Made by a program: the position numbers and the translations under genes | Assembly: GCA_003427395.1 (NCBI GenBank) | Contig: BFEA01000005.1 | Span: 8,461,063 to 8,524,259, forward strand | Direction: 5' to 3' | From: Chara braunii | Taxonomy: Eukaryota > Plantae > Charophyceae | DNA: 63,197 nucleotides | Notes under the pieces: generated by a model | Told to the model about the DNA's origin: nothing | What the model saw: the letters and a program-made list of their open reading frames with translations, nothing else | Databases searched by the model: none | In this document: positions 1-43,974 of the stretch, one piece after another | Numbering within the stretch: position 1 is the stretch's first letter | Layout: the number at the start of each line of letters is the position of its first letter

Positions 1-807
1 ACACACATGCTTTTCACAAGTTTCTCTCCGGATTCGGGCTCCTCTCAGCGAGCGCACTCCAACCCCATCTTCAAAAAAAAATAAAAAAAATTCCTGGGAT
101 GTTTTTTGGCTCGTCTGGTTTTGCCAGGCGGATCCCCCCCAGTCCGTCTGGCCCGGTCCGTCAGGCCCGGTCCGTCTGGACCGGGCGTCGGCTTAACCCA
201 GTTGTAAACTTTTTTTTTTTTTTTTTTTTGGAAAATCTCTCTTTGCAGTAAGCTTTGGGATTTGAAAATCCCAAAATCACATACTCTCATCGAAATTATT
301 CCGGATTATTGACATTTTTTTGTTAATTTGAAACTATATGAACTTGCGAAAATTATTTTTTTGCAGTTCGAACATTATTCTTTGTTTTTGTTAATCGTTT
401 GCAGTCTGAAATTCAGAATTTTTTTAATTTTTTTTCGGATTTATATTTCTGGGGATCGGGAGACCTACAGAACTTGCAATTTTATTTTTTTTACCTTCCT
501 CAATTTTTTTACAACAAAGTTTAAATTTCAAACTTTTCAATTTCATTATTGGCTCCTTATCTGGGTGACCATTGTGACCCCATGGGGTAGGGAAGTGCTA
601 GGGCATTGCATTCCCCCTCTCCCACCCACCTCTTCTACAAGTTCTACGTTGTTGTGTTCTCTCGACCCCCCCCCCCCATCTTCTTCCTTCCCGACGACAT
701 TGGTAGGTTGCCACGTCAGCACAGACTCAGCAGGCCATGTCAACGGCGACACGTCAGCCGACAGTCGTGCCACATTAGCAGCCAGTCAGTGCCAAGTCCT
801 GCGGCTT

Positions 808-2330
808 ATGCTATCAGTCACCCCCTCACAGATGGTCGACATGGACCAGAAGCAAGGGGAAACCGATGAGGCCTATGAGGCCCGTGTATTGGCCCAACAA
901 GCTGAATGGAAGAAGCAGGCGGAGGCGGCCACAACCGCACGGAAGAAGAGGGAGGAGGAGGCACAAGAACAGCGTCGCCTCGATGAGCAACAGCGATTGG
1001 AGGACGCAGACGCAGCAAAGAAGGCTGCAGGCCAACAACGTCGAGTACGCCAAGACACACTCTTCGAAAACGAGGGGGAGCTCGAGGTACTAGTCGGCGA
1101 GTGCCAGAGAAGATGAAGCATCCGACGTTGTGCGCGACATCGCAACCGCATTTAAACATGTGACCGATGTGGTCGCCACATGCACAGCTCAGCAAGAGCA
1201 CATTCTCTGCATCGACACACTGGTCAAACTGTAGGCTGAGCTCATCAACGACCTGTTGGACCGTGTGCGCAGGCTGGAACAGCAGTCTGCAGCAGTCACA
1301 CTCGCCGGATCCTCCGACTTCAGTGATCGCATCAACTCTCTTAAACATGAGGTAGGTACCTTAATGGACGACGTTCCACAACAACAAGCAACAAATCAGC
1401 AGTTTGCACAACAGATCTGTGCAGCAACCGCCAGTCCTACCACGTCACCTTGTGAGAGCATCCCGATGTTCGATGGCCTCCCGATCTTCTGCGATGCCAC
1501 GAAGACCGAGCCTATTCCTTAGTTTCATCAGTTTGAACTTAAACTGGAAATCCATCAGACCCGTGACGCCAGCCGACATATGTATTTATACTCATGATCA
1601 GGCGGCGTGTGCCAAGCCTGGTTGGACAACATGCTGTCCACGCACAAGGTTGCCGTGTCCGAGCTGCACACGAAGATCAGCTGGGCTAATCTCAAGGCAG
1701 CATGGCACAAGCGGTTCCAAGTGGAGCCGCCCAAGCTTCAGGAAATGGAGAAAACCAAAATTTCCATCAGAACACTTTGCCAAGCACGGACTACATTACC
1801 GAGTACCAGCGCTTGACGTCCACGTCCGACTTGCCGCTCGCCTTTTTGGGCATCAAGCATCTCTTCATCACGAGGTCGTGTCAGGCGTTGCAAAATGCAT
1901 TGACGCAGGTCGCGGAGACGCTCTCCACAAGTGAGCTATTATTCGACAAGGGCTCGCAGATTATTCTGACGACTACGGATGCCAAGAACGTCGACTCTTC
2001 GTCTTCAGCAGGCCAGGGTTGAGATCAACATCGGCCGAAAGTGGTCGTGGTCCCGACAACAACGCCAACCGACACTTCTAACGAGGCTATTTCTTCTGGC
2101 GAGGGAGACTGATTAGCAGCCACCCAGGTTGGTGGCCGCCTTGCCAACAAACGAGGACACGACAAATCGAAGACTACCACCGCTCCAAGCCCCGGGCCCA
2201 GCGCAGAAGCTCAAGAACCTTGGACAAGCTACGGTCTCTCAGAAGGCGTGTACAAGATACACACGAGATATCGATATTGCTTGTGGTGCAATAGTGACCT
2301 CCACGAGATGGTCTGCTGTCCCACAAGAGC
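808..2330 (+). pseudogene. gag: gag remnant (coiled-coil N-terminus, capsid-like region, CCHC knuckle)
   Basis: Charged coiled-coil ORF; WLDNMLS...WANLKAAWHKRF segment; CLWCNSDLHEMVCC (CX2CX4HX4C) at ~2278-2322; broken frames. Confidence 0.75.
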
Positions 2331-2849
2331 CAAGGGGAAGTCCTAGTCTGGAAAGTGAGCACCGCCGAGAGTGATGCGACGACACTCTCGACGCCTTTGG
2401 AACCGGTTGCTGCGCGAGCAACCTCCCTTAGTTATGAGGCACATGAGGAAGTCATAAGTCCTCCCATTCCTTATTCTTACGAGGATTATGCTGCCCGCCT
2501 CGTTCCTTCACTGGGTTCTCAAGCTCAAGGACAAGATGTGTGTGCAGTTCATCTCCATCCGAAAGCAGCGACATTTTATCGTCTTCAAGTGGTTCTTCAA
2601 GGGATTCGGCGCGCGAGTTCAACATAGAGGTCTTGGACCCGCTGACATTCGAGGATTTCGCATGGCTTCCTCTCCCTTCCACAGGTTGCTTTCCGGAACC
2701 GCAATGCGCAGCACTATGCGCCCATCTCCACACATACTTAACCTGCTATGCACCACCAACTTCGCTGACGGATGATGAAGTTGCGGTGAACGATCTCCTT
2801 GCGTATGTTACCAAGGGTGGCCAGCGAGTTTCGCATGCAGCGGTACAAT

Positions 2850-4399
2850 GACAACAACGCACTACTCCTCTATGTCCGCATCCAAGTTGGGCAAGCGCCT
2901 CGCAGTGCTTCGCTGGATAGAGGCGCGACTCACAACTCGCAACTTCATGAGCCAGTTCTTTATACAAAGGGTCGATCGGACGCAACAACTCCTTGATCAC
3001 TACTTAGAGGCTGTACTCATGCATGCGGGCCGATGACATTTGACGTCTTGGACAAGGACGTCAACATCATTTTGAGGATGCCTTGTCTTGCAAGTGCGGA
3101 TCACACGGACAACTTCCATCGGCAGACACTTACCGTTCGTGACGCCTTTGGCGCCGAGGTGTCGTGTATTATCCCTCTTCAGCACCCTTCGATCCGGTGC
3201 CGAGCTGTGACGACCAAGTCTTTTCGAGCCACATGTGCTTACGAGCGGACCGACGAGATTGACCTATGTTTTCTTCGAAGCGCCGCAGTACCCGACTCTT
3301 CACCCACTGACTTATCTTCGGACACCCGTGTGGTGCGGTTGCTTGACGAGTTCGCCGACATCTTTGAGTCTCCTACCGGTGTGGTGCCGGATCGACCAAT
3401 CTCCCATGAGATCATTCTTGAGGCTGGTGTCGTATCGCCAAAGAGATGCATCTATCGCATGAGCGAGGAAGAGCTCTCGTTTCTTCGCGCGCAACTTGAT
3501 AACTTGCTGGAGAAGGGTAGGATCTGCCCTAGTAGCTCACCATGTGGTACGCCAATTCTCTTCGTACGGAAGAAGAACAAGAATTTTCGCTTGTGCATCA
3601 ACTATCACAAGCTCAACGCACAAACTGTCAAGAATGCGGGGCCTTTTCCTCGTATCGATGATCTTCTTGAGCGTTTGGGTGGCGCAAAGTATTTTCGAAA
3701 GTTGGATTTGAAGTCGGTCTATCGCCAGATTTCGATACGCTCGCAATATTGCTACAAATCCGTGTTCAAGACGCGATACGGGCATTTTGAGTGAGTGGTC
3801 ATACAACTCGTACCTTTTGGCTTCACCAATGTCCCGACGACTTTTCAAACGGTGATGACCAACGAGTTTCGTGCAATGTTGGACCGGTTTGTGCTGGTCT
3901 ACTTGGATGACATTCTCGTCTATAGCCGGATATTGTAGGATTATCTGGCATCTGGAGCATCTTCCACGCGTGTTGGAGATGCTCCGTCACACCAAGTACA
4001 AAGCCAACCGCGACAAGTGCGAATTCGTACGACAAGAGTTGTAGTACTTGGGTCATTTTTTTGTCACACCGGACTACTGTCGACGTTTTATTAAAAGCCA
4101 TGCGAAGATCTCAGCCAGTTTGACCAAGCTTCAATGCGAGGATCGGTCGGTCAACTTCGACGACCATGCACGGGTTCTTTTTTTGAGCCTCAAAGTCGCT
4201 TTGCTATCGGCAGAGGTCTTGTGTATCTACGACCCACTTTTGCCGACACGTGTCCCTACCGATGCGTCTGGCTATGGCATTGGTGTCGTCCACGAGCAAC
4301 ACGATGGTGTAGATTGGCACCCAGTTGAATACCTTAGCATTCTTAGCAAGAAGGTGTCCGTCGTGCACTCGATTGACGATGTACGGGAGGAGTTTTTGA
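2850..4399 (+). pseudogene. pol: pol 5' part: aspartic protease, RT, N-half of RNase H
   Basis: SLDRGATHN (LDSGAT-like); FPRIDDLLERL; FKTRYGHFE; LVYLDDILVYS at ~3895-3925; TDASGYGIG. Confidence 0.92.
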
Positions 4400-4852
4400 T
4401 TACGTGACACCTGCGGCCTAGGTCGCGGGCAATTCGGCTGCCGCGGCCGAAAAAGTCGATCGTGGTCACGGCCAATGAGGCCCGGTTCACGGCCTGGTTT
4501 TTTAATATTTTTTTAATACCCCTAAAAATATGTAAACGACAAATAAAAAAATATAGGGTTGTAGGGCTTGGAAAATCCTACAATATCATATTTTTTATTT
4601 TGGAATCCAACTTCGTTTAAGATTTAAAAAAAATGCAAAACGAAATTTAATTTAAACAAATTACTATAAAAAAAAAAATGAAAAGTAGGATTTTTTTTTT
4701 CCATTTTTTATCATGAGGGACATGGTCGCTGATTTGTCCTGTATTTTTTGAGATTTTTTTTTCGGGTTTGTGTTGGGAAATTTGGTGTTTAAAAAAAAAA
4801 AAAAATGCAAAAATTGAAAACAAATAAAGAAAAAAAGGGTCAGGTTGGGGTT

Positions 4853-4876
4853 GGTGTGTGTGTGTGTGTGTCCTCT

Positions 4877-4930
<54 letters not shown>

Positions 4931-5451
4931 NNNNNNNNNNNNNNNNNNNNNNNNNNNNNNNNNNNNNNNNNNNNNNNNNNNNNNNNNNNNNNNNNNNNNN
5001 NNNNNNNNNNNNNNNNNNNNNNNNNNNNNNNNNNNNNNNNNNNNNNNNNNNNNNNNNNNNNNNNNNNNNNNNNNNNNNNNNNNNNNNNNNNNNNNNNNNN
5101 NNNNNNNNNNNNNNNNNNNNNNNNNNNNNNNNNNNNNNNNNNNNNNNNNNNNNNNNNNNNNNNNNNNNNNNNNNNNNNNNNNNNNNNNNNNNNNNNNNNN
5201 NNNNNNNNNNNNNNNNNNNNNNNNNNNNNNNNNNNNNNNNNNNNNNNNNNNNNNNNNNNNNNNNNNNNNNNNNNNNNNNNNNNNNNNNNNNNNNNNNNNN
5301 NNNNNNNNNNNNNNNNNNNNNNNNNNNNNNNNNNNNNNNNNNNNNNNNNNNNNNNNNNNNNNNNNNNNNNNNNNNNNNNNNNNNNNNNNNNNNNNNNNNN
5401 NNNNNNNNNNNNNNNNNNNNNNNNNNNNNNNNNNNNNNNNNNNNNNNNNNN

Positions 5452-5491
<40 letters not shown>
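4853..5491. repeat. (TG)n microsatellite spanning an N-gap
   Basis: Seen directly in the sequence. Confidence 0.95.
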
Positions 5492-5492
<1 letters not shown>

Positions 5493-5497
5493 TGATG

Positions 5498-5542
5498 TGT
5501 GTGAACACATTGTGGACACTTCAACACGTAACAAATATGCAC
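5498..5542 (-). pseudogene. Possible GIY-YIG endonuclease N-terminal fragment (Penelope-like)
   Basis: ICYVLKCPQCVHT resembles the 'IY.i.C..C...YIG' start. It lies ~480 nt downstream of a hammerhead on the same strand and is cut off by (CA)n. Confidence 0.4.
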
Positions 5543-6022
5543 TCCGATCCATCGTCAGTGATCAGGGTAAAGTTCCCAAGATGTTTCCTCCAACCATACT
5601 CAAACAACCAAGACATGGTTTTCCCCGAGGACTAGACTCAACATGACCTCCCTAAGATGTGTTCCAACGCTTCACAGTCAAGTGCACTCACAAGCAAAAG
5701 ACATCGAGTGCCCACAACGTAGATACTAAAGATACAACGGCTAGAGGGCACGGGGGAGGCAGGAGGGCAGACAACGCGCAAGCACACCAGCAGGCAAAGT
5801 CCCAAAAGGATGCCAAGACCAGACAGACAAGGAAAACATCAGAGCAAAGCAAGCAAAAGGACATCAAGGCAAAGGCTGGAGGGCACGAGGCAGGCGGGAG
5901 GGCAGACAACATGCAAGAACACGAAACAGGCACACAAGCACACGAAGGCAGACAAACCGAAAAAAATACAAGTCCCAAGTAAATCAGAAGACCGAAAAAA
6001 AAAAAAAAATTGATGATGACAA

Positions 6023-6078
6023 AGATTGTTTCGTCGGAATTGCACCGACTCATCAGGCGGCTGAACCCTCGACAATCT
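6023..6078 (-). ncRNA. Type III hammerhead ribozyme, intact core
   Basis: Minus strand reads AGAUUG-UC^-GAGG guucag CCGC-CUGAUGA-GUCGG ugcaauu CCGAC-GAA-ACAAUCU. Stem III is 7 bp, stem II 5 bp, stem I has one mismatch. Confidence 0.85.
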
Positions 6079-7000
6079 GCAAAAAGCCTGTATTGATGGT
6101 TTGGGTCATGCACCGTTTGACCCTTGTTGAAGGCAGACTGTCCCCAAGTGGAACATAGCAGCGGGCAGCAACCCTGCGGAGCACCAGGCAACGCAGTAGA
6201 GGCAACACGGCTGCACAACGTCAAAGACGACTTCAAGGAAAAACTTGGCATGCAGGACTCGCAGCACAGCAACCAAGCAGTGAAGCACCAGGCAACACCA
6301 CCAAGACAACCACACTGCATGGGACGACAGGGCGAGCGGACACGCAGCAGAGCAACCATGTTGTGAAGCACAAGGCAACGCCAACACGTGCAACCGAACT
6401 ACGCGACACGCAAGCAAAGGACACAAAAGGCTAGCCCTGTGGAAGGGCGGCGAGGCAACGGAGCAGCGAAGTGCAAGGCAACACCACAACCCAGCCACAC
6501 CACACAGCGAAGACAGCAGCTTGCCAAGAACGACCTGCGACGCAAGCGGGACGGGCAGCAAGGCAGTGGCGGAGGGCAGACGAGGCCGTCCACACATCCT
6601 ACATGGAGCAAAGCAGCACATCACCTACTCACATCACGGGTGAACCCCACAGACTGTTGGTTCCCACCACTCACTGAGCCAGGGAAACACTCCGACGAGC
6701 ATTCGTCATCACCTACAGGCAACACAGACAACCCGAACTGAGCGGCCCCCATAAGAGTGCAGTAGGCACTCCAAATGAGGAACCACCGACTGTTTGGCAC
6801 CACTTAAGGGTGCTCAGTTTGGGCAAGCAAAAACACTTAGAAAAAGATCAGGGGGAGGACNNNNNNNNNNNNNNNNNNNNNNNNNNNNNNNNNNNNNNNN
6901 NNNNNNNNNNNNNNNNNNNNNNNNNNNNNNNNNNNNNNNNNNNNNNNNNNNNNNNNNNNNGTCCATGTGTCGGGGGGAGGGGAGGGAGGACCCCTCCCCC

Positions 7001-7041
<41 letters not shown>

Positions 7042-7178
7042 CCAACCAATCAATCAATCAATCAAACAATCAATCAATCAATCAATCAATAAAAAAACAT
7101 TCAATCAATAAAAATAAAAATAAAATCAATTTTTAAAATTTTTTTTGCCACTTCCCCAAAGCCCCCCCCCCTAAATTT

Positions 7179-7222
<44 letters not shown>

Positions 7223-7366
7223 TACAGGGTGGCAGTGGCCGACGTGCGGAGGCGGGGCGCGTGCACCCCCACCTGGCCCTGTTGTGGCCGCGAGTAAACT
7301 CGGTCGTGCAGCCTTGGCCGCGGGCCCGCGGCCGGCCTCCTCGGCCACGTCGAAGGGGTCACGTAG

Positions 7367-9110
7367 GTTTTTGACCTTCATACACGGGCTTAAGCGGTGG
7401 CAGCATTTTTTTCTCGGTCGAAGTCAATTCCGATGGGGAATGGATGAAAGTTCGTTGGTCCTCTACAAAACCCAAGACACGGTCAATAGCACCATCACCC
7501 GTTGGATGGCCTTCATCAACTAGTTTGACTTCTTCGCTGATCACATTCTGGGAAAGTCAAACTGTTTTGCGGATGCTCTTTCACGATGTCTGGACCATTG
7601 TACCGCAGTCCACTCGACTTTCGAGATTGATGACGACTTGTGGGACAGCTTCATCCGCGGCTACCAAGCCAACCTCGAGTTTTGCGATAAGTACGTGAAT
7701 TGCTCCTCTCCAAATCCGGCGCCATCGCATTATCGGATCCAAGAGGGATATTTGCTCGTCCACTCGCGGGGGAAGGATCTTCTTTGTGTGCCAAGTGATT
7801 CACACTTGTGTATGCGGCTTCTTGGCGAGTTCCACGATGCTCCCGCCATCGGACACTTTGGCGCCAGTCGTACGACTAGTCGACTTCGTAAGCACTTTTG
7901 GCAGTCCGGCCTTCTCAGCGACATCACACACTATTGCGAGTCATGTGAGGATTGTCAACGTTGCAAATCCCGCAATCATTGTCCGTACGGCGAGTTGCGA
8001 CCATTATCGGTCCCCTTGCGACCAAGGGAAGTGATTGCCATTGACATCACAGCGTCGCTCCCCAAGCACAAGACCGGTGTGGATGAGATTCTCACGGTGG
8101 TCGATCGACTCACGAAGTTTGCCATGTATTTGCCTTGCCGCTATCACGCCAAGGCACCGGAGTTGGCCGAGGTTCTTTACGCTGGTTGGATTCAAACCAA
8201 GGGTTACCCCAAGGAGATTATTTGCGACTGCGACACTCAGTTCGTGTCCAATTTTTGGTAGACACTCGTCAAACGATGGACTCATCTCTCAAACCGAGTT
8301 CGGTTCACCACCCCCAAACCGATGGCCAAACGGAGAGGGCGCATCAGACCGCACAAGTTCTTCTTCCCACTCTCATCTATTACAGCCGAAAGGATTTGGT
8401 TGAGCGTCTGCTGGATGTCGAGTTGGCATACAACTTGTCCATTCATCCGGTTATCGGGATGTCTTCCTTTGAGTTCGAGTATGGTTCGCCCGTCACTTCT
8501 CCGTTGGACACGATTATCCCACGGGCCACCGAGAGCGACGGCCACCTTCTCTTTATTCGTTGTATGCAAGAGCTTCTTGTCAAGCCATGCAACCAGATGT
8601 TGAAGACCCAACAATGTATGAGCCAACAGGTGAATCGCCAGCATCTTCCTTGTCCATTCCGCATCGGCGACCTCGTACGGGCCTCCACCGCGGAGTTCAA
8701 CCTCGAGCAAGATATCTCTCGCAAGCTCCTTCTGAAATGGATGGGGCCCTGGCCCATTGTGACACCTGCTGGGGATGCACCCGAAGCGCCTTCATTTGTC
8801 ATTCAGATGCCTGCCCCACTTGCCCATCTACCCGGTATTTCATTGCTCTAAGTTAGCTCTGTTCGTTTCAGCGGAACACGTCGACTTTCCAGGAGGACGA
8901 TCGCAAGACCCACCCTCCATGGACGGTTTTCAGGAGGTTGGCGATATTTTCTCCCAGTGACGTTACGGAAACAGGCCGACAAAGTACTTGGTACATTTTT
9001 CCTATTGCATCCATAAGGTTGACCGTTGGTTGACCCACGCGGAACTTCAGGCAACAGTCTCCAACGTTCTCACACGTTACGAACGCAAGTTACAAGGCAA
9101 GTCAGTAGCT
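7367..9110 (+). pseudogene. pol: pol 3' part: RNase H C-half, integrase (HHCC, DDE, GPY/F) and chromodomain
   Basis: FHDAPAIGHFG...CEDC; VVDRLTK; HPQTDGQTER; KWMGPW; chromodomain-like QEVGDIFSQ*RYGNRPTKYLVHFSYC...DRWLTHAEL at ~8930-9080. Confidence 0.9.
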
Positions 9111-9202
9111 TCGGCTCCACACTGTACTCACGTCCAGGTTCCACCATCGGATCGTTAGCTTCACCCTCGCCCCAGCTTGACTTCCTAAGGGGGGGGGGGG
9201 GG

Positions 9203-10110
9203 TGTTACATGTTGAGCCTGCACACAGGCCCCATTTCAGGGGCCGACGATTGTTGAGCGACCCCTAGGCCGCACACCCTTCGGACGCGCTCCTTGGAGGC
9301 CCATGGCGACCCTTAGGCCGCAGGTATCGTTTTGAGACAACATTTGTTTATTTATTTGTTGTCCTATTTTTGTCTTTTCAAAAGTCATTTCTGACTTGCA
9401 GTTCCCAAGGCAGTGCCTTGAGTTGGGTACACCTGGAGGTGGGCCTCCGCTGTCCGGGTACAGCCTTTACAGGGTCTAGACGTTCGGCCGGAACCCAAAC
9501 CCTATAGGCCCACGTTTTGGGCACAGGTCGGTAGGCACAAAGAGGCAAACCGGTCGGCCTAGCGATGCATATAGCTGGGCCACATTGAGGGCAGACACAC
9601 AGTTCGAGTAGCTCACTTCTTGGGCGACACGCTGCCGAGCCAGCACTACAGCGCTACGTCGTTACACTGGAGTAGAGGAAAGGTGTAGGTAGGCAGAGGG
9701 GCGGAGTCCATACTTGCACCGCCGCCATAGTTGGGGTCTACATGGCAACCTGCACATGATGACGACGACAACAGTCAGTCTATGGCGGCAGTTACCTGCA
9801 GGTGATGTGGAAGAACTGTAAGCGCGCTACGCAGCTAGAATATTATTTTGCCCCACATAGTAAACAAGGCAGCACAACGCCACCCACCGTAGCAATGTGT
9901 TGCGTAGTTCTGAAGACAGGAACAGGACCGTCGCCAGTGGGACTTATCCCCTGGGGCCATGCCCCACTTGTCGAGGTTTGGTTCTAGTTTCAAGTATGCA
10001 GGGCTCCCTACCATCCGATCTGAAAATTCCACGGCCACAGTGTGACCACGTTGAAAAATACGCGAAACATAAACTAAGCCCCCGCTAGTGGGAAATGGGC
10101 CCCGGTAACG
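9203..10110 (+). repeat. 3' LTR of gypsy element 1 (end approximate)
   Basis: Starts with TGTTAC right after the PPT; GGTAAC(g) at ~10104-10110 is a candidate inverted end. Confidence 0.55.
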
Positions 10111-10844
10111 TGTCAAATCCACAAAAAAAAAAGAAAAGTTGCCCAAACGCGTCGCACCCGTACATAGCACCCCCCAAAAATAACAACTGCCAGATACGTA
10201 AAACAAATGGAAAATTGCAATCGTCGACTGTTTTTATTTTTTTCTGCCTACTACCGAAAAATAAAACAAACAAAGTAAAAAACGACAGACATCTACAATC
10301 GAACGATTCACCATGCGAGAAATTCATGTTGATCGATGGTGGCCTGCCAAACAAGCACTTGAGCGACGTCACGAGATGGCCCGAGAGAATGTGACAGTTC
10401 GGTAAGAAACGTCCGGGGTCGATTCCTTGCCAACGATCATGTGAATCGGACGGCTCCTTCCCACTTTCCAGTCGTGGGTCGGCGCGCAGCTAGCCACGGT
10501 CCTCCCCCCTGAGGCTGATACGTGTTAAGGGGTAGCATATATATATTACCTAAACGCCCGCGATGTGGGCCATGCCTGCAAAAATACGAAATGTTGTAGG
10601 CAACCTTACATGGACCACTCGCATAAACTAAGACAGACTTAAAAATAAAAAAAAATAAAAATAAAATAAAAATAAAAATAAATAAAAATAAAAATTAAAA
10701 AAAAACGAATCACAGGGTAATAAAGAATAGCCTAAAACTGGCTACAAAGTCTAAGTTTAATTGACAAATAACTTAGCGCCGCGGTGTGGGCGGTGCAGGT
10801 TACACTCGCAACCAAAACTACCGAAACGGTGAAGAAAGTATCAT

Positions 10845-12560
10845 AGAGTAGAGGAGAATGTCGTGTCATAGAGTGTCGTAAAGTGTCGTAGAGTGTCGTA
10901 GAGTAGAATACAGTCCAGTATAGTAGAGTATTGTAGAGTAGAGTGTCACACAGTAGAGTAGAGTAGAGTGTCACACAGTAGACTCTGTGTAGAGTAGAGT
11001 CTCGTTGTGTGTCATAGAGTGTCGTAGAGTAGAGTGTTGTAGACAGTGTCGTAAAGTGTCGCAGAGTAGAGTAGAGTAGAGTAGAGTAGAGTAGAGTAGA
11101 GTAGAGTAGAGTAGAGTAGAGTTGAGTACAGCACAGTACAGTATAGTACAGTACAGTACAATAGAGTAGAGTAGAGTAGAGCAGAGTGTCACAGAGTTAA
11201 GTGGAGTACGACATAGTACCATAGAGAAAAGTAGACTATAGTACAGTACAGTACAGTACAGTAGAGTACACTAGAGTACAGTAGAGTGTCATAGAGTGTC
11301 GTTGAGTAGAGTGTAGTAAAGTAGAGTAGAGTAGAGTAGAGTAGAGTAGAATGTCGTTGAGTAGAGTAGAGCAGAGTAGAGTAGAGTAGAGTAGAGTAGA
11401 GTAGAGTAGAGTAGAGTAGAGTAGAGTAGAGTAGAGTAGAGTAGAGTAGAGTAGAGTAGAGTAGAGTGTTGTAGAGTGTTGTAGAGTAGTGTAGAATAGA
11501 GTAGAGTATCGTAGAGTAGCGTGTCGTGGAGTAGAGTATAGTAGACCATCGTAGAGTAGAGTGTAATAGAGTAGAGTCGAGTAGAGTAAAGTACAGAAGA
11601 GTGTCGTAGAGTATAGTATAGTGTCATAGAGAAAGGTAGACTGTCGTACGGTAGAGTAGAGTATAGTAGAGTAGAGTAGAGTAAAGAACTGTAGAGTAGA
11701 GTAGAGTATCGTAGAGTGTCGTACGATAGAGTACGGTAGAGTGTCGTACAATACAGTAGAGTAGATTGTTGTAGAGTAGAGTCTTATAGAATAAAGAAGA
11801 GTGTCGTAGAATAGAGTGTTGTAGAGTAGTGTCGTAGAGTGGAGTAGAGTAGAGTAGTCATAGAGTTATGTACAGTAGAGTAGAGTGGTGTAGAGTGTCG
11901 TAGAGGAGAGAAAAGTAGAGTAAAGTATAATAGAGTAGAGTAGAGTAGAGTAGAGTAGAGTAGAGTAGAGTAGAGTAGAGTAGAGTAGAGTAGAGTAGAG
12001 TAGAGTTGAGTTGAGTTGAGTTGAGTAGAGTAGAGTAAAGTAGAGTAGAGTTGAGTTGAGTTGAGTAGAGTAGTGTAAACTCCGTAGAGGAGAGAAAAGT
12101 AGAGTAAAGTAGAGTAGAGTAGAGGAGAGTAGAGTAAAATACAGTAGAGGAGAGAAAAGTAGAGTAGAGTAAAGTAGAGTAGAGTAGAGTAGAGTAGAGC
12201 AGAGTAGAGTAGAGTAGAGTAGAGTAGAGTAGAGTAGAGTAAAGTAGAGTACAGTATAGTAGAGTAGAGTAGAGTAGAGTAGAGTAGAATAAAGCAGTGT
12301 AAAGTAGAGTAGAGTAGAGTAGAGTATTATAGAGTGTTGTAGAGGAGAGAAAAGTAGAGTAGAGTAGAGTAGAGTAGAGTAGAGTAGAGTAGACTAGAGT
12401 AAAGTAGAGTAGAGTAGAGTAGAGTAGAGTAAAGTAGAGTAAAGTAGAGTAAAGTAGAGTCTCATACAGTCTCGTAGAGTGTTGTATAGTAGAGTGTTGT
12501 AGAGCAGAGTACATTAGAGTAGAGTACAAAAGAGTAGAGTAGAGTAGAGTGTTATAGAGT
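10845..12560. repeat. (GTAGA)n pentanucleotide satellite, degenerate, ~1.7 kb
   Basis: Seen directly; it generates the STLLY pseudo-ORFs. Confidence 0.95.
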
Positions 12561-13081: not shown

Positions 13082-13136
13082 AGACTATTTCATCGGACTT
13101 TCACTGACTTATCAGGAGGTTGAACCCCGACAATCT
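13082..13136 (-). ncRNA. Type III hammerhead ribozyme, degenerate (CUGAUAA)
   Basis: AGAUUG-UC-GGGG uucaa CCUC-CUGAUAA-GUCaG ugaaagu CCGAU-GAA-AUAGUCU; a direct repeat of the 12619 copy. Confidence 0.7.
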
Positions 13137-13566: not shown

Positions 13567-15600
13567 TGGGTTTGTGTAAACACTGCCACCCGATATATAC
13601 AGGAAACAAGAACATCACATTTGTCATATCGCGACACGTTAGTAGCAGTTTAAACATAGTGGGTGTTTTAGCCATGAACTCATTTGTGAGGATGCAAGAG
13701 GGGTTTGTGATTTAGATTACGGCTGTTGAGGACAGCCATAGGGCGGGTGCATGCCCTGAACCATGCTTTTCGCCGCTTAGCACCCATAGCAGCTCGTTAG
13801 AGGGATGTAGTTCCACGTTAGTTTGTAGGTCAGGGAGGTTAGGGTGAGGTGAGGGAAGAGGGGGGTTGGGGAAGGTTAGGGCTATGTTCGAGTGAACCCA
13901 TACCTGTGAGTGGAATGCCTGTGAAGACGACATCTCTTCAACGGACGTCATTCTCCCTCTTTGTGTTAGGTCACTCGTAGAATGCAATGGAGCGCAACGA
14001 TGGCAGGAGGGGATTAGAGAGTGTTAGCGATGGCGCTGTAGGTCTGCGAGCATTACGTCGCTCGTGCTTGCTCGACACACGAGCATAGGCGAGGAAGGCA
14101 GAGTATGTTGTAGTATTGCGGAGAGGTGAACATGGGAGGGGGAGCGAGCGTCGAGCATTGCAAGTTTACCTTGTTGTAGTTGATGTTTGCAGTGGTAGTA
14201 TGTATATTATATATTAAGAGTATCATAGTGGTTTTAATGGGTTCGTATTTCTTTGATGTATGGTGAGTGGGTATGATATAATCAGGGTTTGTGCGTATTT
14301 GGTGGGGAGGGTGGCGGCGAGGGCCATAGCTATAGTAAATCCGAGGGGGGTTGTGGTGATTGTGTGTGATTTCTTCATGCAGGAAGGGGTAGTGCGGGTG
14401 GTATGCCTATGTGAAGCAACGTTTTGCATGCTTCGTGTTTTTTCAGTACATGTGCTTTGTTTGTCCTATTAGAAAACAAGTGTTGTTTAGTTTTTGTGTT
14501 CTCTTGTCGTTTTGGAGTTTTGAAATGGCTATGGCGTGTGTGCATGGTCGTTGGTGGGTTGGGATTTGTTCGACATGTTGCTTCTGTCATTGTCGAGTGT
14601 GGAGTCAGTGGCGTCCTTTGGGTTTGGTGATGTGTGTGGTTTACTCGTTTTGTTTGGCACGGGTGTCATTTTGGTTTGGGCCCGCGTGGGATATTTGTTT
14701 TTTTTAAAGGTTACTTCTTTTTGTGTATGTGATGGAGTGAGTGCTAGTGTTGTTAGAGTTTTGTTGTTGTTTTTTTGAAAAACAATTGTCTCATAACCGG
14801 TATCTGGCTTATTTTGCGTATGCTTATTTATGTGTTGTGGGTGTTAGTTTAGTTGTAGGTGGCGTAGGTGTGCATTCGATGTGATGCGTGTGTGGTTAAA
14901 AAGTTTTTCAGCTATTTTTCTGTAGACATTTTTAAATAAACATTGTTGAATTTTATGGGGAGCTTATATCTGGGGGGGGTGTGTGCCGTAAATAATTTTA
15001 ATTTTGTTTTTATTATTATTTAATTGATTAGTTTTTTTTTGTTTTTTTTTTTTTAAGTTTTATTTCATTATTGATTTATTTTTATATTACTTATTATTTC
15101 TTATTTCTTATTATTAATTATTGACTATCATTTATTTATTTTTTAGCTTTCATATTTATTATTTTATTTCTCTATTATGTGACTTTTTACTCTAATTATC
15201 AATGTAAGGGTTGCTTGCTTTTTATGTTTTTATTATTATTAAAAATTATAAGTTTATTTATTATTATTCTAGGCTACCAGAGTGGCCCGGGGTCACTTGC
15301 CCGCCCGGGCCATAGGTAATAAAAAAAATAAAAATAAAAAAATTATTTTTAAAATTTATTTTTGTTTCTAAATTTGGTGCAGAATTTCGATGTGCCCTGA
15401 GGCAAAAGTTGTTCAGTTTATTTTTCTGCATAACATAGTTTTTTTCGGATTTTTTTTTTTTTTTTTTTTTTTGCTGGGACCTTCCCTGGTCCTTGCACAG
15501 GCTGGCCACCGGGACCCGGGCGGCCCGGCTGGTAGCCTAGTTATTATTGTTACTTATAACATTTAAGAGGTAAAGTTTTGTTGGAATGTGTGTGTGTGTG
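13562..15600 (-). repeat. Copy 1 of a long dispersed repeat (probable decayed Penelope-like 5' region/ORF)
   Basis: Colinear similarity with ~19800-21490 (+26541-26600) and ~31850-33490. Confidence 0.85.
15269..15540. mobile_element. 272-bp MITE, TIR CTAGGCTACCAG, 8-bp TSD TTATTATT
   Basis: Perfect 12-bp TIR; TSD at 15261-15268 and 15541-15548. Confidence 0.92.
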
Positions 15601-36836: not shown

Positions 36837-37252
36837 ATACATATATATGGATGCAGTCTGTCAAGGATTCGGCCTCCTGACCAGTGAGTAAAAGTCCAAC
36901 GAAACTGTCTTTCACAGCCCCCTTTTCTTGTGCTTCCTCCCTTTCTTCCTCGTCCCCCTAAGGCTTCCTGCCTGCTATGGCGGTTCTTTGTGACTAACCC
37001 NAACGGGAGTCCAGGCAGGGATTCAGACCCAGCAGATATTGCTCCCCAGATGGTCTTTTACTTCTCTACTTCATTGCGCCTCTCAATCTCCCTATCTCTA
37101 TGGACTTGAAATACATCTCAGCCGTGACTGGGTGCCACAGAAACTTGGGGGATGGATTCCACCACGCCCATAAATAAAGGGCCAAGTTTCCCCATTCCGT
37201 AAAGTACTGTTCAGACTTTGCCCTTTCCACCAGCAACACTTCATCTACGCAC

Positions 37253-38648
37253 CTGCCAACGGTAATCCTTTCCAGGCACCGGCTCCGCTGCAATGAACGC
37301 CCTGGAGGCAGGTGGACCCACCAATTTTCGACCACAAAGGGGTGAGCCCTTCGGCGTGCTAGGCACAGCAGCTGTGAAACCTGAAACAGCAAACTCTGGA
37401 GCACTAGGTGCAAGGTCTCCTTCGGATTTTTCAGTCATAACGTTTGCTTCATGTTCTTCTACGACAACCCTTTGTCGGTCGTTGCTGTCTGTCGAATCCG
37501 ACCTGGGTTCCCCCCGGCTGTCCCCAGGCAACTGTACAAGAAGTCCATGCTCGTGAGGAAATCCATGCAACTCTGACTCACATCGTGATTGTTTGACTAG
37601 CATGTCCTGCTCAACAGCATCTTTGCCTGGCACTAAATTCTCACGGCGGACTGGAGAGTCCCCCAGCAACTGCTCAAGAAGTCCATGGTCTTGAAGGAAC
37701 CCATAACCTTCTGACACTGCTTCTGTTTGTTTGACTAGTGCTTCCTGCTGCACCGAATCTTTCTCTGGCATGAAACTGCTGCAGTAGACTGCAGAGTACC
37801 CTGGCAACGGCACAAGATACCCATGCTCTTGAAGAAATCCATGCCTTTCTGACTCACTTTCTGATTGTTTGACTAGCGCCTCCTGCTGCAACTGATCTTT
37901 CTCTGGCATGAAATTGTTGCTCCGCACCGGAGAGTCCCCCAGCAACTGCACAAGAAGTCCATGCTCTTGAAAGAATCCATGCCCTTCTGAAGCAGCTTCT
38001 GTTTTGACTGGTGCCTCCGGCTGCTCCGCATCGTTCTTGGGCATGGAATTGTCTCTGCGGATCCCAGGGTCGCCCAGCAATGTCACAAGAAGTTCACTCT
38101 CTTGAAGAAATCCAGGCCCTTCTGACTCACCTTTCGATGGTTCGACTAGCGCCTCCTGCTGCGCTGGATCTTCCTTGGGCTTGAAATTGTCACTGTGGAC
38201 CGGAGAGTCCCCCAGAGACAACGCAAGAAGTCTATGCCCTTGGACTTCTGCTTGCGACTCTACTCTTTGTCCATCTTGCTCTACGATTCCATCTGCCCTG
38301 CATTTCCCCTGGCTGTCCCCAAGTAACGCTATAAGGAGTCCATGCTCTTGAAGATATCCGTGCCCTTCTGACTCCGCTTCCGACTGTTTGACTAGCGCCT
38401 CCTGCAGCTGTGGCGGGTCTTTGTCTGGCATGAAGTTGTTATTGAGGGCCGATGATTCCCCCAGCAACTGCACGAGCTCGCCCTGACACTGCACTGGGTC
38501 ATACTCCTTTCTTTGCAATCCCAGGTTGGCAGTGCTTGGTACCTCCGCGGGGTTTGCTGCGAATGTAGATCGGTTTTCCTCAGCTTTGCTTGTGGGCGTC
38601 AGCAAAGGCTGGTGTTCAGCTGAAGCAAGCCTAACAGGGATGCATTTC
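37253..38648 (-). CDS. Large coding exon of an unknown host protein with six 46-aa tandem repeats
   Basis: Open ~1.4-kb frame; acceptor TGCAG| at 38649/38648; donor CAG|GTGCGT at 37253 (or stop at 37241); repeat indels preserve the frame. Confidence 0.7.
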
Positions 38649-40343: not shown

Positions 40344-40779
40344 TAGCGATATTCATTATCTGTGATTGGGTCTTTTTCTTTACTGTCTATGAGTTTCTCT
40401 AAGTTACTTTGATGTTTGTGGATGATCCTATCCCCGCCTTCACAGACCGAGTGCTAACGGCGGTACTTGCTTTGCTTAGATCAGGCGAGCTCTGCTGTAT
40501 AATTCTGATAGCGTATGCAGCAGTTTGAGCCCTGAACCACTAGCCTGCGAACAAGAACGCGTTATCCTCTCTGTGAAAAGTAGAGGGGCGGTGCGCTGGT
40601 AAAAGAGAGGAAATGGTAAACCTTATGATGACGTGAATGTGTTTTCCCCTGTATGACAAAAACTTTACTCATGAGCTACAGGACTTCAGTTCTGAGAAGA
40701 ATTGTTTATCTCCTAGCTAAGTTTCTCTTGGATGGAGACTAATGACATCCCACGTTTTGTATAGAAAATGTTTGTGTGA

Positions 40780-40902
40780 CTTGCCGGTGGAATAGGAACC
40801 GGACTTACGCTCCCCAGAATAGAAGGAGCCAGGACCAAAAGGCCTGTTTTNTTAAAAAAAAAAAAAAAAAAAAAGAAAAGAAAAAAAGAAAAGAAAAAGA
40901 AA
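40780..40902 (+). mobile_element. Extremely 5'-truncated LINE tail plus poly(A), 17-bp TSD
   Basis: TSD AGAAAATGTTTGTGTGA at 40763-40779 and 40903-40919; body matches the reverse complement of the LINE 3' end at 43261-43335. Confidence 0.88.
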
Positions 40903-41239
40903 AGAAAATGTTTGTGTGATTGAACCAAGGAAAATCATTCAGTTTGTTCCATGCCGTAAATGAAAGTGAAGACTAGTCATAAGCAGCACTTTCAAGCTAG
41001 GCTACCAGCCGGGCCGTCCGGGCCACCCTATTTTCCTGGACAGTCCGGCCGTGCAAGGACAAGGGAAGGTCCTAGCAAAAAAAAAAAAAAACAGAAAAAT
41101 CCAAAACAAAATTATGTTATGCAGGAAAATAAACTGAACAACTTTTGCCTCAGGGCCACATCGAAATTCTTTACCATTTTTTTTTTTTTGCTTCAAGGGT
41201 CACATCGAAATTGTTCAGCAAATTGATTTTGGAAAACAA

Positions 41240-41710
41240 GAAGACGGCTGTGCGTTACGTTGCGGTAACGCTAACGCGCCGCCCCAGTGGCAGCGTTCGG
41301 GCGCTATGGAATCACTCACGGGGCCGACAACATCTGTCTGCTTCGATTGCCAAAACTTGGCGCTGGCGGGACCATGGCAGCGCAGGGAAGGACACTGGGG
41401 TGTTAGGGGGGTGTGCCGAGGGAGCTGTGATATGCTCCTGGTCGTTGCTGGTCTCACTTGACTTCTTTCAGGAATCCTAGTTCGGTGGAGGAAGGAGAGC
41501 GTGATATGTGGGGGCCGTCGGCGGGTGGGATGATGGGATCCGGACGCTGCACCATACCTGACGAGACTGATCGGGGGTGCTGACCCCTCAACCTTTGATA
41601 TGGAGGTTTTTGCGGGGGTCTCCTGCCCTGACACTGTTGTCAGGGTTAGCCCGCGAAGGTGAGGAAGACAGGAGCTATGGGCGTGCTCACCTGTCATGGT
41701 CCGTGTTAGG

Positions 41711-41785
<75 letters not shown>

Positions 41786-43150
41786 GTACATAGTGGACTG
41801 TTTGTGTTGGATTGTTTGTTGGTTTGGTGTAAGTTTTTGGTTTGGCTTGGAAATTTGCCACGAATAGGTGAGTGTCGCTCCGTGGGGATTCCATCATGGT
41901 GGGCGGTGGGGTCTCTTTGGGAGCCGACACAGATGGGTGGAGTAGTTTAATACCCTGAATCGCGCGGAGGAGGGTGGGTTAGTGGGGTCTTTGACCCCTG
42001 CCGTGCGGGTGGCGGGGTATCACTGCTGGTTTATGAAGATATTGGGCTTGGTGACATATTCGGGTTGGGCAATCGTGGGTTTGATCTCCATCTTTTTTTT
42101 ATAGGATTTGGTTTCTGTTTCGCTGTTTGGGTAATAGTTGTTGTAATTTGTTGCGATTTTTGTGTAGTGTTTTGCATGCGATGGAATGAAAGAGAGAGTG
42201 CTGCTCTGTAGAAACGCCACTATGGTGGGCAGTGGGGTTTCCTTGTGAGAAGGTGCAGATTAGAGGAAGTGGTTTTCCCTAAATCGCGAGGAGGCGGGTG
42301 GGTTTGCGGGGTCTTTGACCCCTGCCGTGTGGGAGGTAGGGTATTACTGCTGAGACGTTGAATTTGGGTCAGATATTCATTTCATCCTAATAGGCTGCTG
42401 TTTGCTGTCATCTGAATTCTCAAGGAGAAGTGGCGAGCATTGCTTCACAGGGGCTTCGTCATGGAGGGAGGGGAAGCATCCATAGGGGGTATATGCAGAT
42501 TGAGGGAGAGGCTTACCCTAAATCACGAGGAGGTGGGTGGGTTTTGCGGGGCTTTTTAGCCCCTGCCGCGCGGGAGGTAGGGTAATCCCCTGGTTAGTGA
42601 AAACAGCCTCGTCATGGGAGTTGGTGTTTGTAATGACGAGTGTGGGGAGGTGCTATCCGCTTTGAATCGCGAGGAGGTGGGTGGGTTTGCGGGGTCTCTG
42701 TCAGCAGTTTGGGGCCTGTGGGCACAGACCCCTGCCGCGCGGGTGGTAGGGCGGATTGGCAGGGGTTGGTAATAACTCCAGATGAATGGTGGACATGATC
42801 ACGCAGCACTGATCGCTCGTTTCTTTTTTGTGGCTTTGATTCGTTTTCTCCGGTAGGTGGAATTTAGGTCACTAACTTAGGGTTGACATGACTATTGTGA
42901 TTACAGTTTTTAGTGATGAACTTTAGATTTTCGTAGTATTTTCATTTCTTAGGGATAATCTAGATTGTGATGATAATTTTCGTTCACTTTTGGGGCTGTG
43001 GAGTTGGTTGTGGAGTTGGCTGTGGGGTTAAAACTAGTGGTGCCCTCTATGTGCTTGGCCGATGATGCCTTGCCCACTGAGGTCCCCACCTAATTTTGTA
43101 AGGGACGCCGGGCCCGGTTCCCGGCTTTTATTAAAAAAAAATAAAAAAAT
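41240..43150 (+). mobile_element. Poly(A)-tailed, apparently non-coding retroposon or long LINE 3' UTR
   Basis: Inserted within the MITE; ends GCCGGG..CCCGGC hairpin followed by an A-rich tail; TSD not resolved. Confidence 0.5.
41950..42760 (+). ncRNA. Four copies of a conserved G-rich structured RNA motif, family unrecognised
   Basis: Copies at 41950-42020, 42268-42348, 42512-42586 and 42652-42760 show compensatory changes and G-U pairs. Confidence 0.6.
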
Positions 43151-43238
43151 GTTCAGTTATTAAATATATATATATTTACCATATTTAAACTAAAAAATAA
43201 AGTTTTTTTTTTTTCTTTTGAATTCTTTATCTTCCCCG

Positions 43239-43974
43239 TTTTTTTTTGTTTTTTTTTTTTAAACAGGTCCTTATGGCCCTGGCTCCATTTCCTTTCTGGG
43301 GAGCATCAGTCCGGTTCCTATTCCACCGGCAATTCAAAATACAATGTTACATCATGACACACACTCACGCTTCCTCCCGTCTGGCGGAAGGACCCATGAC
43401 CAGCATTGATTACTCCGGCCTCGTGGAGGATTGACTGTCAGCTTGCCCTACTTCCACCTTCCCTCTCAGGTCCACATCATGAACCTGTCAGATAAATAAC
43501 AAAGAGCAAAAAAGGTAAAAGGAGCTGCGGCGGATGCACTTTCGGAAATTGCCCAACAATATTATGTGCCCTGTGATGGATCTTGTCCATCTGCTGGCTG
43601 GGATCTCTGTCTTCTCCACCCTGCTTCTAAGTTATGCCAGTTTTTCCACTGTATGCGACGGTCATTTATCTTTGCTACTTTGCCCCCTGCGAGCCACACC
43701 TTAGTGAATTTTGCCGAGATTCTTCTCTGTTGCTCTTCGTCGTCTGGCATGGAGTGTCTCGTATTTTGCCACTTGCACAGAATCTCTGCCTGAATCAAGG
43801 TTCTTGTCTCTGCCCATACCTTCTCCCTTGGAATTGAGAGTCCCTCTATGGTTCTGCCGCACCTTTCCTTCCAGATGGACCGCAGCGTTACCTTTCTGAT
43901 CATTCCGAACCACGTTTTCTCTGTCTTGTGGAATTGAGTTGGGATGTTAGTCCATAGACGGAGTTGGATGGGGT
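43239..43974 (-). mobile_element. L1-type LINE 3' segment: ORF2 C-terminus, 3' UTR, poly(A)
   Basis: WFGMIRKVTLRSIWKERC (LW.IWKERN-like); stop at 43562; T-run at 43239-43260. Confidence 0.85.

Follow-up and report, generated by a model that had tools for sequence, protein, structure and literature searches.

To our knowledge, the copying of non-coding retroposons by LINE machinery has been worked out in detail for very few systems, namely Alu with SRP9/14 and the SINEs that carry the 3′ stem-loop of a LINE. In the strict sense, a SINE carries a tRNA-, 7SL- or 5S-derived Pol III head and is shorter than about 600 nt. The repeat units of the hominid SVA retroposons are 35–50 bp long and are arranged head to tail, and we know of no description of nested helices in these units. 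The VNTRs of SVA are G-rich and prone to form quadruplexes (PMC3667099, PMC12053379). In L1, G-quadruplexes of the 3′ UTR modulate retrotransposition, according to a passage of PMC7952902 that cites Sahakyan 2017. Furthermore, the reverse transcriptases of stringent-type LINEs recognise 3′ stem-loops that are common to these LINEs and their SINEs (PMC5135761, PMC7952902).

Here, we analysed a repeated G-rich motif in a 63,197-nt stretch of DNA from a streptophyte alga, referred to below as the window. The motif is ~75 nt long and occurs four times on the + strand, in the region 41950–42760. Each copy comprises an outer helix (P1), a short helix (P2), a G-tract and an inner hairpin (P3). The copies were located at 41948–42024 (c1), 42272–42348 (c2, with a U-U mismatch in P1), 42511–42589 (c3, in which P3 is swapped to GGGGCU/AGCCCC and P2 contains an A-C mismatch) and 42655–42758 (c4, in which P1 has a different and longer sequence and P3 is extended by 27 nt). 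The consensus of the 5′ half, GGAGGNGGGTGGGTT, was found in the window at 41966, 42290, 42529 and 42673 with 0 mismatches, that is, four times versus an expectation of 0.41 even when up to two mismatches were allowed. The consensus of the 3′ half, CCCCTGCCGYGYGGGWGG, was found at 41995, 42319, 42560 and 42729, with an expectation of 0.00. The array that had been noticed in the sequence-only reading is thus present as described, with each half of the consensus occurring exactly four times on the + strand where nearly none was expected. A covariance model was built from the four copies, as that reading had proposed, and was run over the whole window without filters. It recovered these four copies alone, with scores of 96.2, 100.3, 89.1 and 80.0 bits for c1 to c4, respectively; the next best match scored 13 bits (E 0.5), and no fifth copy was found in the window with the filters off. 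Two G-rich pieces of the same element, at 41520–41540 and 41602–41628 on the + strand, show 74–76% identity to parts of the motif and may be decayed units; the covariance model does not pick up either of them.

The array lies inside a non-coding, A-tailed retroposon copy at 41219–43149 (1931 nt, + strand), which has an A-rich tail and a high contig depth and in which no Pfam domain or tRNA was found. The A-rich tail of the sense strand was read directly at 43130–43149. The 7-mer TGTTCAG precedes the element at 41212–41218 and is repeated directly after the tail at 43150–43156, forming a putative target-site duplication. In one DNA contig, position 41154 is followed directly by 43157, the insertion being left out. 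The left flank belongs to a very abundant repeat that recurs near 15.3 kb, and the right flank weakly resembles the continuation of the same repeat (z about 2). Within the element, the array occupies an internal position, 650–1540 nt from the 5′ end, and its modules stand 390–1200 nt 5′ of the tail.

Several other repeats were observed in the window. A 5′-truncated LINE tail at 40780–40903 (+ strand) ends in a long A-rich tail and is bordered by a perfect 16-nt duplication, GAAAATGTTTGTGTGA, at 40764–40779 and 40904–40919. Over its final ~80 nt it agrees with the 3′ end of a minus-strand LINE, whose tail lies at ~43240–43262, and judged by depth it belongs to a very abundant family. The 3′ end of a further retroposon at 41010–41093 (+ strand) consists of a GC-rich palindromic segment and a poly(A) run, and its tail sequence is unlike that of the element with the motif and also unlike that of the abundant LINE. 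An extremely abundant short repeat at 41100–41180 (+ strand) and 15377–15440 (− strand) had a summed DNA contig depth of ~389,000, versus 12–16 at 40453–40754; it adjoins A/T-rich tracts, is partly duplicated at 41192–41218, the place of the retroposon insertion. In addition, an ORF of 454 aa at 37241–38605 (− strand) contains about five tandem repeats of 46 aa (138 nt) rich in E, Q and L.

We searched the element for coding capacity and for known heads. No Pfam domain was found in its 10 ORF pieces at E up to 1, save one chance match, so coding capacity for a reverse transcriptase or endonuclease is absent as judged by Pfam; homologues of two ORF translations over the element were also not found. 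A protein-coding repeat was rejected, as the start-to-start spacings of the copies are 324, 239 and 144 nt, the copies contain indels and there is no Pfam match. ARAGORN found no tRNA in the element and Rfam 15 gave no match to 7SL or 5S. A tRNA-derived SINE was rejected on the Rfam and ARAGORN results, and a SINE in the strict sense was rejected because a tRNA-, 7SL- or 5S-derived Pol III head is lacking and the element is 1931 nt long. In a blastn search of the element against the window, only its internal repeats were recovered and no other segment resembled it. Likewise, no partner LINE sharing its 3′ end or the motif was present in the window, where the tails of the neighbouring LINEs differ from that of the element. 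The motif pattern gave 0 matches in metagenome contigs (two scans), viral contigs and prokaryote genomes.

In X1, a DNA run from this organism, the element had a summed contig depth of 127–12,000, compared with 12–16 at 40453–40754; this 10- to 800-fold difference is one of summed contig depth and not an exact copy number. Many distinct contigs of this run carried variants of the element. The raised depth indicated that the element is a member of a multi-copy family. The earlier description of the host as a poly(A) retroposon is therefore correct, subject to two reservations: the target duplication is short (7 nt) and no partner LINE was seen in the window.

Conservation is concentrated in the motif itself. 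The pairwise identity was 77–86% in the motif versus 44–65% in the ~80 nt upstream of each copy, the spacers scored like shuffled sequence except for one T-rich pair, and conservation fell abruptly at the motif edges. The sequence-only reading had named spacers as conserved as the motif as the mark of a plain tandem duplication. The spacers are far less conserved than the motif, and the array therefore does not bear this mark. The claim that the copies are set apart by unrelated spacers needs one amendment: the spacers do not align, but c3 and c4 nearly abut, with little spacer between them. Inside the motif, the G-tracts were indeed the most conserved part, since 15 of the 15 interior unpaired G columns are invariant, compared with 10 of the 16 non-G columns. 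Within the element family, the most frequent changes are G-to-A and C-to-T, yet the G columns of the motif are invariant. The plant telomere unit CCCTAAA, present as a single copy in c2 and c3, was dismissed, as it is not kept in c1 and c4.

The repeated unit proved to be larger than the motif, because the ~80 nt upstream of each copy can also be aligned; the unit is ~160 nt long and consists of two folded parts. The upstream part of units 1–3 folds by itself into a common hairpin of ~60 nt with a G-rich 9-nt loop, AUGG(U/A)GGG. In the consensus fold, the hairpin of unit 1 lies at 41872–41930 (MFE −32.8 kcal/mol, z −2.7), and those of units 2 and 3, at 42198–42256 (z −0.55) and 42437–42496 (z −1.8), have the same architecture. 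The hairpin of unit 4 at 42606–42651 (z −1.6) is shorter and different, being only partly alignable to those of units 1–3; all four are on the + strand.

Pairing was counted on a model-guided alignment of the four copies (A4). A fold with three nested helices, P1, P2 and P3, pairs 74 of 76 cells, compared with 40–53% of cells for control structures slid by 1–3 columns. Five pairs are changed on both sides, three of them in P1 and two in P3. The exchange of GGGGUC/GACCCC for GGGGCU/AGCCCC in the inner stem was confirmed as a change of P3 on both sides, and the lengthening of this stem in c4 was borne out by the 27-nt insertion, which folds into three stacked helical segments above GGGG/CCCC. 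In a DNA contig of a second family member, P3 contains 31 letters of other sequence, which likewise fold into three stacked helical segments; the two extensions are both helical and differ in sequence. For the outer stem, which had been said to keep pairing through changes of sequence, the stems quoted for c1, c3 and c4 are correct, while P1 of c2 contains the U-U mismatch. The CGCG/CGYG helix (P2) could not be upheld as a supported stem, as it never covaries and has the A-C mismatch in c3. In shuffled data, 12–14 of 500 shuffles matched the observed covariation. With four sequences and this frequency, the covariation is modest, suggestive rather than proof; the statistical basis is four paralogous units and one contig fragment. 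The z-scores of the folds of single copies were weak (−0.4 to −2.2).

The strand of the folded RNA was also examined. Of the 76 cells, 74 pair when the + strand is read versus 68 on the − strand, and seven G-U pairs are formed on the + strand, which become A-C mismatches when read on the − strand, versus one on the − strand. The G-U excess and the better pairing indicated that the RNA is the sense strand of the A-tailed element, as had been proposed from the G-U pairs.

These data bear on a rival account in which the array is no more than a diverged internal duplication (VNTR) without an RNA function, its units having arisen by unequal exchange or template switching, its core having been homogenised and its stems matching by luck. 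Retroposons commonly carry internal tandem arrays, and the family behaves as this account expects: DNA contigs jump between units with skips of 121, 299, 341, 411 and 744 nt, indicating that family members differ in unit number, and one recombinant contig fuses the 5′ half of the P3 of c2 (42315) to the 3′ half of the P3 of c4 (42727). The covariation, moreover, is drawn from four sequences. Homogenisation, however, does not account for the complementary changes on both strands of P1 in c4 and of P3 in c3, nor for a P3 extension that has remained helical in two elements despite its different sequence in each, nor for the sharp drop of conservation at the motif borders. We regard plain duplication as rather unlikely, though it deserves to be taken seriously, and the fold of the motif looks to be under selection.

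The G-tract was considered separately. The pattern GG-A-GG-N-GGG-U-GGG, four runs of at least two G with short loops, is present in 4/4 copies. When quadruplex energies were included in ViennaRNA, a two-layer G-quadruplex (GG-A-GG-N-GG..GG) was predicted in the MFE structure of 4/4 copies. The predicted quadruplex sits inside P1, between P2 and P3, in the order helix, quadruplex and hairpin, and the fold containing it is 4–8 kcal/mol below the quadruplex-free fold. A G4Hunter score of ~1.7, as obtained for the motif, is nothing unusual in this window, where 66 regions reach 1.5. A quadruplex of similar sequence has been designed: the oligo s2-A is a synthetic DNA intended as a parallel G-quadruplex with single-residue linkers (PMC3575790). 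This DNA oligo contains the 13-mer GGAGGTGGGTGGG of c3 and c4. The two differ in that the oligo is synthetic DNA, has four G in its first tract and assembles into interlocked dimers (PMC3575790), whereas the motif would act as RNA in its context and has a two-G first tract.

The same G-tract can also be paired. Together with the invariant ACCCCUGCCGYGYG it forms an imperfect helix of 13 bp in which 98% of cells pair, and the G-tract varies at precisely those positions that this helix leaves unpaired. The conservation of the G residues hence needs no quadruplex. The helix is the RNAalifold consensus and, when quadruplex energies are left out, the MFE structure of c1 and c4. A second rival explanation builds on it: each module would be a long imperfect hairpin without a quadruplex, in which the G-tract, on the 5′ side, and the C-run make up a 13-bp helix that stacks on P1, and it would be bound as dsRNA or act as a stability element. 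This helix has 0 pairs changed on both sides, leaves the second invariant G-rich segment, GGGUU(U)GCGGGG, unexplained in a loop, and disregards both the altered P3 of c3 and the P3 extensions that form helices. We consider the long hairpin as the whole explanation unlikely. As to the state of the G-tract itself, the modelled folds would be compatible alike with a quadruplex, with the G-tract/C-run helix or with a switch between both. The sequence-only reading had treated the G-tracts as unpaired, which is not necessarily so given the C-run helix. Its suggestion of a quadruplex embedded in a duplex matches the prediction in all four copies, and an ordinary imperfect helix explains the G conservation equally well.

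We compared the motif with known RNA families using Rfam 15, whose covered classes include hammerhead, HDV-like, twister, pistol, hatchet, SRP, snoRNA and tRNA-like RNAs. The search at gathering thresholds gave 0 matches in the whole window, and a search of both strands of 41400–43200 with permissive filters and E up to 10 gave nothing relevant, the sole overlap with the motif core being a chance match of 15.9 bits to a lncRNA. As a positive control, a type III hammerhead (Hammerhead_3) was detected at 6023–6078 (− strand) with 41.1 bits and an E of 7.6e-8 in a 301-nt search; its gathering score is 48.5, so that it was missed at the gathering threshold and clear with permissive filters. Another, weak match to Hammerhead_3 was observed at 13082–13136 (− strand; 24.9 bits, E 0.01). 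Because a like search detected the hammerhead at 6023–6078, the lack of an Rfam match is not a problem of sensitivity for the hammerhead class. The Rfam comparison advised at the outset thus matched no known family, in agreement with the sequence-only reading, in which it had not been recognised as hammerhead, HDV-like, twister or pistol.

Other structured RNAs were rejected in turn. A cluster of snoRNAs or miRNAs was rejected, as there are no boxes and no Rfam match. An HDV-like fold on the minus strand was rejected because the topology is nested and not pseudoknotted and no model matched; the likeness to that fold presumably lies in the string CCUCCUCG alone. The Alu domain of SRP has adjacent helices 3 and 4 with a UGUAAU-type turn between them and loop-loop pairing. 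It was rejected, since no SRP model matched and the nested pairing is unlike two adjacent hairpins with kissing loops. Furthermore, the strand expected to make up helix 3 of an Alu domain changes together with a distant 3′ strand, as P1, and its change in c4 is unmatched upstream.

The array was thinly covered in two poly(A)+ RNA-seq runs, in which the depth reached at most 12 reads (X19) or stayed below 2 (X18). First mates of X19 were 2.5–4-fold more frequent on the + strand over 42265–42717, at low depth and in a library whose type is not known. The bias has the same sign as that over the +-strand LINE tail (40785–40905) and is opposite to that over the minus-strand LINE from 43239 on; it fits sense transcripts and is only suggestive of them. 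No pile-up of read ends was reported over the array at this low depth.

A new self-cleaving ribozyme, which had been raised as one possible meaning of the motif, or a divergent SRP Alu-domain fold could also be imagined; other elements of the window carry hammerhead-like motifs. Nothing points to the motif being a ribozyme. No ribozyme or SRP model matched either strand at E up to 10 in searches that found the hammerhead control, no site with a pile-up of read ends was seen at the low depth, and an Alu-type helix 3 would require the 5′ strand of P1 to covary with the G-rich segment upstream, whereas it covaries with its 3′ partner. We hold both to be very improbable. A role at the DNA level, with the units serving as promoter or enhancer monomers like the 5′ monomers of mouse L1, as G-box sites or as DNA quadruplexes, also appears improbable. 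The invariant GGGTGGG-type boxes, the variable unit number and the G-richness resemble such elements, and the likeness is one of resemblance only. Against it, the array is internal to the element, and the complementary changes and the G-U excess on the + strand indicate RNA.

The way in which conservation is distributed, the complementary changes of P1 and P3 and the difference between the strands suggested that the motif is a selected RNA module of the retroposon transcript. The motif is real and uncatalogued and is probably functional, and its host is probably a new retroposon family. The explanation that we tentatively put forward, and which is quite possibly correct, is that selection maintains the four copies as a cis-acting RNA module of the sense transcript, repeated in a VNTR-like manner in an abundant non-coding A-tailed retroposon and offering a protein multiple docking sites. 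P1 would close each module, so that the module could fold alone whatever the spacers. The invariant G-runs and the single invariant C-run would then give either P3 with a two-layer quadruplex between P2 and P3, or one long imperfect helix. The repeated module may serve as a docking site for a protein of a partner LINE or for a host binder of G-runs, and docking would improve the odds that the RNA is stabilised and reverse transcribed. A more specific proposal is that the covarying helices hold a two-layer quadruplex, or switch between a quadruplex plus hairpin and the long helix, and that several such modules in a non-coding retroposon of a streptophyte alga capture the reverse transcription of a LINE; this proposal is speculative and has, in our estimation, a low chance of being right. 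If it were true, the quadruplex-holding or switching module would represent a new family of RNAs and would do by means of a G-quadruplex what Alu does through SRP. If the array is a decaying internal duplication alone, it is ordinary repeat anatomy.

Compared with the known systems, the element resembles the hominid SVA retroposons in being ~2 kb long, non-coding, poly(A)-tailed, bounded by a target duplication (a putative one here) and multi-copy, as well as in carrying internal repeats that are rich in G, prone to form quadruplexes and variable in number from copy to copy (PMC3667099, PMC12053379). It differs from them in that its units are ~160 nt long with two folded parts and unrelated spacers, it resides in an alga and its sequence is unrelated to theirs. 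As with the L1 3′ UTR tract, the G-runs lie in the 3′ portion of the sense transcript of a poly(A) retrotransposon. That tract, unlike the motif, is a single polypurine tract without framing covarying helices, is not repeated and belongs to an autonomous element, and the quadruplex here is a predicted one. The module may be a natural RNA quadruplex framed by helices. Like the 3′ stem-loops of stringent LINEs, the module would be a folded RNA signal within the non-coding 3′ portion of its retroposon, but those stem-loops are single and stand at the very 3′ end, whereas four modules are present here, 390–1200 nt from the tail. Being compact, repeated and evidently constrained, the module is a tractable candidate for another LINE-capture device, in an abundant algal retroposon.
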